DNA from: Zygophlyctis sp. KS116
Lineage: Eukaryota; Fungi; Chytridiomycota
Assembly (NCBI GenBank): GCA_054661495.1
Contig: BAAFSQ010000112.1
Span: forward strand, 1-29,706
DNA length: 29,706 nucleotides
Direction of reading: 5' to 3'
The translations under genes and the position numbers were made by a program. Shown piece after piece: positions 21,447 to 25,369 of the stretch (its first letter is position 1; the number at the start of each line of letters is the position of its first letter). Below the pieces are notes generated by a model. The model ran no database searches and was not told the DNA's origin. It saw only the letters and a list, made by a program, of their open reading frames with translations.

Positions 21447-22282
21447 ATGACTGGACACCGATTTATTGCCAAGACAGACAATATTAATGACTTGAATTCT
21501 CTTCTCAAACCTCTAGGAAATAAAGTCGGCAATGTTGTCATTTCAGACGATGGATTGCAGTTTGCGATTGAAGTTGATAAAGTTTTGCTGATTCAGACAT
21601 GGATTCCAAGAGAAATATTTCATGATTGGACCGCTGATGAATTGGAATTTTCTATTGATTTGGGGAATTTGTTGGATTCTATTCATGTTTTTTCAACTCT
21701 AAATTTATTATTAGAGACTAGTAGTGAATCTAATGATTTGATACTGACTAGTGAGAATGATGATTTATGCACTAGAATAGCATTAAAGAAATATGATAAA
21801 ATTGCTCTAAATACTAGTTTATTAGTGTTTAGTGACTCTGATCTATGTTCGAAAATTATTTTAAAGGTAATTTTAATCTTCAAAGTATAGTCGAGTTTGT
21901 TAAGAGATGTATTGGTAGATTTGGACACGTCTTGTAATTTGATAAGTTTTGTCGTGTCTGGAAATGGGTTGATAATTCGTACTGTTGGGTCATTTGGAGA
22001 AACGGAAATTGAATTTGAAAAGGAATCAAATGTTTTTGATTCCTTTGATTTCTTTGGAAATAATCAAAGTTTTACAGTCTCTTTTAATTTTTGTCTGTTT
22101 AAACAATGTTTAAAGGCACTTTTAAATTCAAAGAAAACTTGCATCAGGATAAATTATGATGGGATTCTCTCTTTGCAGTTTATGATTCTTCTTTCGGATG
22201 AATCAAAATCATCGTTTATTGAATTTGCTGTACTCAATATGCATCATCTAATTAATAGATTACTCCGGCAGTGTCAGATTGA
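21447..22282 (+). CDS. RAD1: 9-1-1 checkpoint clamp subunit of the Rad1/Rec1/ScRad17 family
   Basis: Reads FIAKTDNINDLNSLLKPL..DGLQFAIE..IPREIF..GSFGETEIEF..KALLNSKKTCIRINYDGILSLQFMI..FIEF. Introns at 21867-21890 and 22230-22258. Confidence 0.85.
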
Positions 22283-22393: not shown

Positions 22394-22915
22394 TTAGAAT
22401 CCACAAGAAAAACTGCCACACAAAATGGTATCCCATGAAAAGAAAGAACTGCCTTTTGGGGCATTAGCTAGAGCAATCTTCTCTGCAATTTTTGGATTGT
22501 ATTTTTGTCTATTTTTTTTATGGACTATATTTCCTTTTGGGATTATTCCTTTATTGCTATTTGGGATTTCTTGGATGGTTGGATTGGGATCAACTGATAC
22601 ATGTCTATTAGTGTTTTTGACAGCGTTTGGTGACTTTAGAATTGAGCGGAGAGTTCTTTGAGTTGGTGGAGTTTGCTGAACATGTTTAACTCCAATAAAC
22701 TTGCCGGTTAAAGGATCATAAACTTTAAACATGTTTGATCCTGGAGCCGTTGGCGGATTGAATGAATTGTGAGAATCAGGAAGTCCACTACCTTTGATCG
22801 TTGACTGTGCGGTGTCAACAAGTTCATCCCCTTGGCGAATGATACTCTTTATCATTCCGAATGGAGCACTAAGCACAACTGAAGAGTAAAGGATGCAATG
22901 TAAAATAAAAATCAT
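22394..22915 (-). CDS. Putative secreted protein (173 aa) with one SILK/RVxF-like module
   Basis: Signal-like start MIFILHCILYSSVVLSA-PF and module RSILKSPNAVKNTNRHVSVDPNPTIQEIP. Intronless. Confidence 0.7.
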   Translation of the reverse strand: MIFILHCILYSSVVLSAPFGMIKSIIRQGDELVDTAQSTIKGSGLPDSHNSFNPPTAPGSNMFKVYDPLTGKFIGVKHVQQTPPTQRTLRSILKSPNAVKNTNRHVSVDPNPTIQEIPNSNKGIIPKGNIVHKKNRQKYNPKIAEKIALANAPKGSSFFSWDTILCGSFSCGF

Positions 22916-23158
22916 TTTGTAACAAGTCTTGCGGCATGTTGTTGGCGCTCTTATGCAAGGGACGGCATGAGGCGGCGACCTTATTGATACTATATCAGTC
23001 GGACAAGTTATAAATTCAGAATAAGCATTACTTCTATTGATACTGTAAATAAAATAACTTATGAAAATGAAAAAGACAAACTTGTTCTGTAATGTTAAAA
23101 TTATAAAAGAGCCGCAAAAAGGGATGGATCCATCCTAGTGTGAGCTTTTCCTCTTGCA

Positions 23159-23788
23159 TTACCAGTTTAATTCTTTAGTTTTGTGAATTTGGTGATTCTT
23201 TCTTTGAGGAATAAGTCGGATTTCCAAATCAGTTGAAAATGTCGCATGTTTTTCAGTGTTTTTGTCTGACTTGGAAGCCTTTAGAATAGACTGGACATGT
23301 TGTATTGGCGGAGAATCGGTATCAGATCCAGAAAAGGGTGCACGGTATGGGCCCTGATGTGGTGCAGGCAGTTCTCCCGGCAGTACAGTGGACCTGGGAA
23401 CTCTTTGAGGTCGATTTCTAGTAAGTTTCAAAAGATTGTGATATCGAGGGATCACTCTGACTCCATAGTCAGCAGAAAATGTTACTTGTTTTCTTGTTTT
23501 CTCCCCAGTATTGTATGTCCGAAGAATTGAAGGCGGTAACGTCCTTTGATGCGGTGCATGTAAATCAAAGGAGGACTCATCAGGAGAGCCATGCGACATC
23601 CTTGAAGGTAGCTGAGTGTCTGAAGATTCCAATCTATTTCTCAAAGGAGGATTGCTGGGTTTAATAGGGGGTGGTATTGCGATCAGTTTTCCAGATGCTT
23701 CATCGATGTCAAAGTACTTTATTCCCCAGCCAAAGGAGGCACTAAACACTAAAGAAGAGTGTAGTAAGGCAAAGAAGATCTGTTTCAT
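23159..23788 (-). CDS. Putative secreted protein (209 aa), paralog of 22394-22915, with two SILK/RVxF-like modules
   Basis: ATG at 23788 gives MKQIFFALLHSSLVFSA-SF. Modules are PSILRTYNTGEKTRKQVTFSADYGVRVIP and QSILKASKSDKNTEKHATFSTDLEIRLIP. Confidence 0.7.
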   Translation of the reverse strand: MKQIFFALLHSSLVFSASFGWGIKYFDIDEASGKLIAIPPPIKPSNPPLRNRLESSDTQLPSRMSHGSPDESSFDLHAPHQRTLPPSILRTYNTGEKTRKQVTFSADYGVRVIPRYHNLLKLTRNRPQRVPRSTVLPGELPAPHQGPYRAPFSGSDTDSPPIQHVQSILKASKSDKNTEKHATFSTDLEIRLIPQRKNHQIHKTKELNW

Positions 23789-23950
23789 TATTATGAAGGA
23801 AGTTCCAGTGCTTGCCGCATCAGCGGCATGTGGTTTTAAATTCTGATGTCTCAAAATTCAGCCTAAAATCTGGATTTAATATTAATGCTCAAACAATATT
23901 AATCAAGCATTCCAGTAATGGACCTACGGATTGCATCAATGACATCTTTT

Positions 23951-24215
23951 CAAAAAAAGGATTCTGACAAAATTCAATACGTTGGAAAATGATTTATAAC
24001 TTAAAAACAATTTGTTCAGATTTAGAATCCACAAAATAGAAATTAAATCCCATGAAAAGAAAGTAATATCTTTTGGGCCATTAGCGATGTGTTTCTGGAT
24101 ACCCTGTTCGGGAACATTTAGATATTTGCGTTGGAGTTGTTCTAGATATTTGCGTTGGAGTGGAACTTGTGTCAAGTGTATCATTTTTAAAATCCTTTAT
24201 GATTTACCAGTGATG
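23951..24215 (-). pseudogene. Degraded third copy of the secreted-protein family (3' end and 3' flank)
   Basis: 23951-24086 aligns with ~22336-22468 (AAAGGATTC.GACAAAATTCAATACG, ATTTAGAATCCACAA, ATCCCATGAAAAGAAAG; peptide ANGPK..FFSWD). It has an upstream in-frame stop and a 24-bp-period duplication at 24119-24161. Confidence 0.7.
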
Positions 24216-25260: not shown

Positions 25261-25301
25261 TAGCCGACTGGAAATGTTGACCAGTTTGACTCAACTGTAA
25301 C

Positions 25302-25369
25302 GTTTTACAGTCTCTTTTAATTTTTGTCTGTTTAAAAACTGTTTAAAGGCAATTTTAAATTCATAGAAA
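25302..25369 (+). repeat. 68-bp copy of RAD1 coding sequence 22069-22136
   Basis: Ungapped alignment with 4 mismatches. Confidence 0.9.

Follow-up and report, generated by a model that had tools for sequence, protein, structure and literature searches.

The locus examined here raises the question of what proteins that look secreted might do with a sequence cassette resembling the docking motifs of protein phosphatase 1 (PP1). It lies in a window of 29,706 nucleotides (the whole stretch of DNA that was analysed, contig BAAFSQ010000112.1 of Zygophlyctis sp. KS116), which is AT-rich (about 35% G+C), eukaryotic and carries the genes TAF8 and Rad1. Directly downstream of Rad1, on the minus strand, are two genes with intact open reading frames (ORFs), here called W1 and W2. 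The explanation that we favour, tentatively and holding it somewhat less likely than not, is that they encode disordered proteins that are secreted, dock PP1 through the cassette and work inside another cell as foreign PP1-interacting proteins.

A repeated cassette in two tandem genes

Candidate ultra-short introns were searched inside the W1 and W2 ORFs and none was found, which bears out the first-pass annotation of two intronless ORFs starting at ATGs 22915 and 23788. A cassette of 28 amino acids, with the consensus SIL[KR]-x8-xxxVxF-x5-Phi-x-x-IP (Phi, hydrophobic), occurs once in W1 and twice in W2, the three copies having the very sequences given in that annotation:

22394-22915, minus strand: W1 gene, 173 amino acids, ATG at 22915, single exon, one cassette
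23159-23788, minus strand: W2 gene, 209 amino acids from the ATG at 23788, single exon, two cassettes
22562-22645, minus strand: W1 cassette, residues 91-118, SILK-x8-NRHVSV-x5-IQEIP, Val in place of Phe/Trp
23447-23530, minus strand: W2 cassette 1, residues 87-114, SILR-x8-RKQVTF-x5-VRVIP, canonical RVxF
23207-23290, minus strand: W2 cassette 2, residues 167-194, SILK-x8-EKHATF-x5-IRLIP, Ala at the Val position

In a BLASTP comparison of W1 with W2, significant similarity was confined to the cassette (E values of 2e-4 and 9e-3), in line with the earlier remark that the two proteins share little else; judged by eye, their leaders are alike and they have a short hairpin motif in common. In single-sequence AlphaFold2 (AF2) models, a weak test as the alignment has no depth, all three cassettes have a predicted local distance difference test score (pLDDT) below 50, and disorder is predicted for these regions. 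The models of W1 and W2 showed no globular domain, only short helices and one hairpin.

A word-based search recovered two orthologues of W2, P0001 (90% identity, from a lake-type metagenome in ENA) and P0002 (79% identity, from a Logan assembly). Relatives of W1 (P0005 and P0011-P0014) are present in ENA and JGI data. W2 cassette 1 reads RKQVIF or RNKVTF in the orthologues, the basic residue being shifted by one place with [RK]x0-1VxF retained, and this shift from RKQV to RNKV appears to be compensatory. W2 cassette 2 reads EKHVTF or EKQVTF in the two orthologues; its Ala is therefore a peculiarity of this strain. Among three close orthologues, all substitutions inside the W2 cassettes fall on 'x' positions, except for one Val/Ala change.

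Composition-preserving shuffles contained SILK, then RVxF, then a hydrophobic pair in at most 2e-4 of proteins, whereas RVxF alone arose by chance in 14-32% of the shuffled sequences. A strict DNA pattern of the cassette, run over the whole 12.7-Mb genome, matched only W2 and the paralogue C195a described below, plus two spurious sites, one of them with a stop codon; the reversed-pattern control gave 0 matches in the same genome.

A family of about ten genes

A profile search with the cassette in the window's own 12.7-Mb assembly found two tandem genes on contig C195 (100 and 182 amino acids), one gene on C904 and one on C263. When the leader region was used as the profile instead, C195 yielded a third gene, and C18 and C70 proved to hold members too. 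The C904 locus also holds C904a, a leader-bearing ORF of 133 amino acids with GILR and one unit of a second motif, RSNAFDE, treated below. The family thus totals about ten genes on six contigs. The complete cassette is present in W1, W2 (twice), C195a and, with PILK, in C195b; C904b has the RVxF half alone, as a canonical RKVTF and with no SILK, and decayed versions occur on C263 (THVLF), C70 (QRVTSA) and C18 (QRATSA). Paralogues that are otherwise unalignable still agree in the cassette residues that correspond to the PP1 anchors. The first-pass annotation had made further paralogues a touchstone for the module and had proposed a genome scan for leader plus cassette: the module is found in C195a, C195b and others and in the metagenomic orthologues with its motif-defining positions kept, every cassette-bearing gene also has a hydrophobic leader, and the strict pattern marks no genuine gene outside the family.

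The C263 member (L013:3790-4029, minus strand, 79 amino acids) still has the leader and K-N-T-E-T-H-V-L-F-S-P; beyond these it differs and is cut short, and may be a decaying copy. On the sister-strain contig L025, the C904 gene and a repeat ORF found at the end of C263 form a single gene with a 30-nucleotide GTAAT..CAG intron between them; the C904b gene looks truncated because this intron contains an in-frame TAA:

L009:1407-1436 and L025:150-179: C904b intron, 30 nucleotides, GTAAT..YAG type, in-frame TAA inside

Outside this genome, a HMMER search with the cassette profile over 1.84 billion cluster representatives (E <= 1e-3) returned nine proteins: five of this lineage, three spurious, and P0009. 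The spurious matches P0007 (a WD40 protein, hit through a VxFSPDG motif), P0008 and P0010 were set aside on inspection as WD40 and low-complexity sequence. A PDB profile search with the cassette gave no match, the ESM Atlas held no usable look-alikes for W2, and Pfam hmmscan (E up to 1) on eight family proteins detected no relevant family, including neither IPP-2 nor the PPP1R15 family PP1c_bdg. Word-based protein searches with W2, C195b and C195c returned only relatives of the same lineage (59-98% identity). On current data the family appears confined to this lineage, and the exhaustive search supports the earlier suggestion that it is undescribed.

P0009 (585 amino acids, L022:3001-4758, plus strand, on a 911-kb metagenomic contig) contains SILK-x11-KSLRF-x5-IREI twice, in the same order as the cassette and with nearly the same spacing, but it has no signal peptide and no further similarity to the family, and its E value (6e-4) is borderline. 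It is probably an independent, convergent case of the same docking grammar.

Likeness of the cassette to PP1 docking motifs

RVxF was scored by regular expression with a loose definition, [RK]x0-1[VIL]{P}[FW], and two stricter forms (Hendrickx, Meiselbach). KQVTF of W2 cassette 1 and RKVTF of C904b pass all three, RDVQF of C195a passes only the loose one, and EKHATF of W2 cassette 2, RHVSV of W1, THVRF of C195b and THVLF of C263 fail, the EKHATF position passing in both orthologues. The SILK motif, [GS]IL[RK], precedes the Val by 11 residues in W1, in C195a and in both cassettes of W2, and all complete cassettes have a hydrophobic pair, with V/I at +6 and Phi-I at +8/+9, followed by an invariant Pro. 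This arrangement resembles that of known regulators: in the passage of PMC3792071 that cites Hendrickx 2009, SILK is placed N-terminal to RVxF in PP1 regulators, and among extensions of RVxF the most frequent is V-x-Phi-Phi after five residues, the hydrophobic pair lying 5-8 residues downstream (PMC9813921). For SBG1, a plant regulator of 129 amino acids, SILK- and RVxF-dependent binding and inhibition of PP1 have been shown by experiment; the distance from Leu to Val in the cassette, 13 residues, comes near to that in SBG1, 16 residues (PMC13652734).

Several observations weigh against docking of PP1. Only 3 of the 7 cassette copies in the genome satisfy an RVxF definition; the basic residue is missing from the C195b and C263 copies, the former of which also has PILK for SILK. 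The first-pass annotation had taken RKQVTF as the one canonical copy and the other two as degenerate, a judgement that holds for W1, whose cassette is invariant across five relatives and reads RHVSV, with Val for Phe, in every relative seen, and that fails for EKHATF beyond this strain. An invariant Thr (of KNT) and an invariant Ile-Pro lie outside the PP1 motif definitions. Among three close W2 orthologues the variable sites are 11/56 in the cassettes versus 42/153 in the rest, a difference that is not significant (p = 0.29). The hydrophobic C-terminal tail of W1 could hold that protein at the fungal surface. Finally, RVxF and SILK matches located in luminal or extracellular segments are known to lack function, an example being BM3 of LAP1B (PMC3792071).

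Much of this would suit secreted disordered proteins with a role in the extracellular space or along the secretory pathway, such as components of wall, adhesive or matrix or ligands of an extracellular partner, their likeness to PP1 motifs being coincidental. The signal-peptide features of all members are what such proteins would show, the invariant Thr and Ile-Pro are not called for by the PP1 definitions, more than half of the copies fail the RVxF definitions while RVxF by itself is common in shuffled sequence, the tail of W1 would fit, and the module was singled out among many windows scanned for anything striking. Coincidence sits badly, however, with the low chance rate of the ordered composite and its restriction to this family within the genome, with the fact that the residues kept across the unalignable paralogues are exactly the anchors of all three PP1 motifs, and with a basic residue that moves in the orthologues and yet stays. 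Nor do the proteins have the cysteine-rich or glycosylated domains typical of wall and adhesion proteins. We regard an extracellular role as possible but doubtful.

A leader with the features of a signal peptide

The N-termini of W1 and W2, described as signal-peptide-like in the first-pass annotation, kept that description in a rule-based analysis of the eight complete family members, in which hydrophobic core, AxA-like sites and an insertion energy unlike that of a membrane segment all agreed:

23735-23788, minus strand: W2 leader, residues 1-18; 12-residue core at 0.33, 19-residue window at +3.6 kcal/mol, small -3/-1 residues at 16-18, AF2 helix at residues 2-17
22862-22915, minus strand: W1 leader, residues 1-18; signal-peptide-like, AF2 helix at residues 2-14

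The leader starts with Met-Lys(-Lys) in all eight except W1 and C195c. Its 12-residue hydrophobic core has summed Hessa values of -2.1 to +0.9 kcal/mol, and small residues (ASA, TSA, TAA, ASS, SAS) occupy -3/-1 at positions 15-18. The insertion energies of the 19-residue windows, +2.7 to +8 kcal/mol (all above +2.6), are too high for a transmembrane helix, which argues against a membrane anchor. The ATG of C195a and of C195b is preceded at a distance of 1-3 codons by an in-frame stop, so the hydrophobic segment is truly N-terminal there. With its 15-18 residues the leader is not long enough, and also too polar, for a membrane span, and from these features it looks like a cleaved, putative signal peptide.

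PP1-interacting proteins are expected in the cytosol or nucleus, and here all members carry the leader; access to PP1 would therefore require translocation or non-cleavage. We know of no translocation signal in chytrids, which is a further point against action in another cell. Non-cleavage would make the leader an uncleaved or reverse signal anchor in the endoplasmic reticulum or the mitochondrial outer membrane, with the rest of the protein in the cytosol, and the family would then consist of membrane-tethered targeting subunits whose cassette docks the fungus's own PP1. No translocation step is required by this arrangement, and the genome encodes one canonical, ordinary PP1 catalytic subunit (PP1c, contig C17), with intact groove-forming segments and no leader, besides a PPZ-like enzyme. 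Tethering of PP1 to a membrane is workable, as the Legionella effector LpPIP shows (PMC12313075). The flank after the leader is net positive in C195-type members, so that a reverse signal anchor retains some plausibility; in the C195, C904 and C263 members this flank is more positive than the N-terminal one (+2 to +5 vs +2 to +3), favouring an N-out, C-in orientation. In W1 and W2, however, this flank is net negative, the uncharged runs of the C195, C904 and C263 members are merely 13-18 residues long, and the small AxA-like residues expected for signal peptidase are conserved at the end of the core in all members. On the insertion energies and these sites we rejected an anchor as the principal interpretation and kept it as an alternative that we consider unlikely.

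In the PPZ-like phosphatase (L024:1426-2241, minus strand) the N-terminus is extended by a long stretch beginning with Met-Gly, a possible myristoylation site, and containing K-S-I-L-K-D.

A second motif in some members

A second motif, R-[SN]-[NY]-A-F-D-E-acidic, is present in one to five copies in C195a, C195c, C904a, C904b/C263b, C18 and C70, always after Arg (KR, RR, PR or QR) and often at the extreme C-terminus. It matched no known linear motif, and might serve either for docking, as a further site, or as a unit for processing. The ORFs concerned are:

L014:2-679, minus strand: ORF with the second motif
L013:4349-4840, minus strand: ORF with the second motif
L009:288-686, plus strand: ORF with the second motif
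L019:1501-1740, plus strand: ORF with the second motif
L020:1369-1599, minus strand: ORF with the second motif

The 'AF-pocket' motif of RRP1B (RVAF, PMC9813921) was considered as a counterpart; its context differs (R-x-A-F as against R-x-x-A-F) and we make no such claim.

Repeats of this kind could point to precursors of secreted peptides, from which a Kex2-like protease would excise the R|SNAFDE-acidic units at basic residues, the cassette being part of a pro-region or of another released peptide. Behind the signal peptide of C195c and C904b/C263b there are up to five tandem RSNAFDE units, each following Arg, and in C195a, C18 and C70 the motif forms the extreme C-terminus. W1 and W2, though, have no such repeats, the sites are mostly not dibasic, the cassette lacks a flanking basic pair, and no processing or modifying enzymes were seen adjoining the genes, all of which makes a precursor improbable.

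Selection and turnover at the locus

Pairwise ratios of nonsynonymous to synonymous substitution (dN/dS), at dS values that reached 0.29, were 0.40-0.41 for W2 and 0.38 for W1, compared with 0.08 for the adjacent Rad1 exon. Intact ORFs are present in five or more metagenomic relatives that are independent of one another. W1 and W2 are thus coding and fast-evolving, under purifying but relaxed selection. Duplication debris at the locus and the lack of any Pfam, PDB or Atlas match might suggest chance ORFs or decaying duplicates with no function, but this is highly improbable given the intact ORFs and dN/dS of the relatives and the same architecture kept by paralogues on four more contigs.

The debris consists of a partial copy of W1 upstream of W2, in which a translated FFSWD fragment is visible:

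23914-24085, minus strand: remnant of the W1 3' end and of W1 downstream sequence, upstream of W2, with direct repeats D4, D6 and D8 (83-97% identity)

On the sister-strain contig L011 the order is W2, two identical copies of W1 in tandem, and Rad1. From the remnants in the window and the tandem copies on L011, the locus is evidently duplicating and decaying, with a W1 copy number that differs between close strains. The family evolves by birth and death, and its evolution is effector-like: it is lineage-restricted, has a dN/dS of 0.4 versus 0.08, occurs in tandem arrays and varies between strains in the number of W1 copies. A stray Rad1 fragment of 71 nucleotides (window 25299-25369, 93% identity) lies 3.2 kb from its source.

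Other features of the two proteins and their setting

The eukaryotic character of the DNA was confirmed by housekeeping genes in the genome (TAF8, Rad1 and PP1c) and by introns of 24-30 nucleotides. Further features in the window are:

22679-22735, minus strand: W1 beta-hairpin, residues 61-79, VYDPLTGKFIGV; AF2 strands 61-66 and 73-79, pLDDT 87-88
23672-23719, minus strand: W2 short beta-hairpin motif, residues 24-39, YFDIDEASGKLIAI; AF2 strands 25-28 and 35-38
21866-21889: 24-nucleotide GTAAT..TAG intron that splits Rad1

The hairpin unit common to W1 and W2 reads V-Y-D-x-x-T-G-x-x-I-G-V and is modelled with confidence by AF2 in W1; it occurs twice in the W1 of a relative with 79% identity (L012:1288-1536), so the number of repeats varies. 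The C-terminal tail of W1 (window 22394-22450) is moderately hydrophobic and rich in Cys and Phe, FFSWDTILCGSFSCGF, and is still recognisable in the remnant copy at 24040-24085. From its composition it could be a lipid-anchor or glycosylphosphatidylinositol (GPI)-type signal or a membrane-association element; an anchor there would bear on whether W1 departs from the fungal surface.

Proposed mode of action

In the explanation that we favour, secretion followed by PP1 docking in another cell, W1 and W2 would belong to a lineage-restricted family with about ten members, found in an uncultured chytrid-like fungus from fresh water. A signal peptide at the N-terminus, later cleaved off, would bring the small, largely disordered proteins into the secretory pathway. 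On the PP1 catalytic subunit, the SILK pocket would receive the Ile-Leu of SILK and the RVxF groove the Val and Phe of [RK]x0-1VxF, with the downstream V/I-x-Phi-I-P continuing the strand as the hydrophobic-pair (PhiPhi) motif. Since PP1 resides in the cytosol and nucleus, such proteins would first have to be delivered into another cell, presumably that of an algal host, where these foreign PP1-interacting proteins could sequester, inhibit or retarget host PP1; with its two cassettes, W2 could hold two phosphatase molecules. We infer leader cleavage, PP1 binding, delivery into the host and the effect on it.

To our knowledge, which includes a limited literature search, no chytrid effector has a known host target. 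In a bolder and rather doubtful extension, the family would be the first chytrid effector family with a predicted host target, its full cassette, in one or two copies, capturing PP1 of the host alga and the RSNAFDE-acidic repeat of some members recruiting another host factor, such that the proteins would be modular scaffolds of short-linear-motif mimics. If the cassette binds PP1, these proteins of roughly 200 amino acids offer a directly testable entry to host manipulation by chytrids, as peptides, point mutants and the universally conserved target are easy to obtain. Should it not bind PP1, they would still be a clean case of disordered secreted proteins that conserve a linear motif awaiting its partner.

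Comparison with known systems

The RXLR effector Pi04314 of Phytophthora infestans likewise has a signal peptide and acts as a foreign PP1-interacting protein, forming host-pathogen holoenzymes through an R/KVxF motif (KVTF; PMC4740116). It differs in coming from an oomycete and in having an RXLR-EER leader, a folded WY domain and a single KVTF with no SILK, whereas the chytrid proteins, predicted to be largely disordered, match no Pfam domain, show no sequence homology to it and combine SILK, RVxF and PhiPhi in one full cassette (two in W2); PP1 binding has been shown for Pi04314 and we infer docking for the chytrid proteins. Neither the RXLR-EER leader, expected within about 60 residues of the signal peptide, nor the WY fold is found in the family. 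The RTLR directly before SILK in W1 (residues 87-90), the only R-x-L-R, was discarded as an RXLR motif and put down to coincidence; W2 reads RTLP instead, and the other members lack it too. LpPIP (Lpg1625) of Legionella pneumophila is also alike in that it recruits active host PP1 through RVxF in a disordered segment; it is, however, a bacterial effector delivered by type IV secretion and tail-anchored to mitochondria, with RVxF alone (PMC12313075).

Inhibitor-2, the N-terminus of KNL1 and plant SBG1 (PMC13652734) share with the cassette a SILK N-terminal to RVxF on a disordered chain. They differ, as does RRP1B (PMC9813921), in being cytosolic or nuclear with no signal peptide, and in RRP1B the SILK-like motif comes after RVxF. 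On these sequence comparisons the family appears to belong to no described family, as it has the characters of neither the RXLR-WY, the IPP-2 nor the PPP1R15 proteins.

PPP1R15/GADD34 and the viral proteins ICP34.5 and DP71L, the latter being examples of PP1 capture by motif mimicry, have the local pattern RVxF-S-x4-V-x-Phi-Phi and a region that recruits eIF2-alpha. The VRF-SP-x3-VRLIP of C195b resembles this PPP1R15/ICP34.5 pattern, but those proteins lack SILK and a signal peptide. Capture of PP1 by motif mimicry is thus already known; what would be new is a secreted family in a fungus, with the full SILK-RVxF-PhiPhi, sometimes doubled, and with a second motif. If the explanation that we favour is true, hijacking of PP1 by mimicry would extend from viruses, one oomycete and one bacterium to the fungi, and this would be the first use of the full three-motif cassette instead of RVxF alone.

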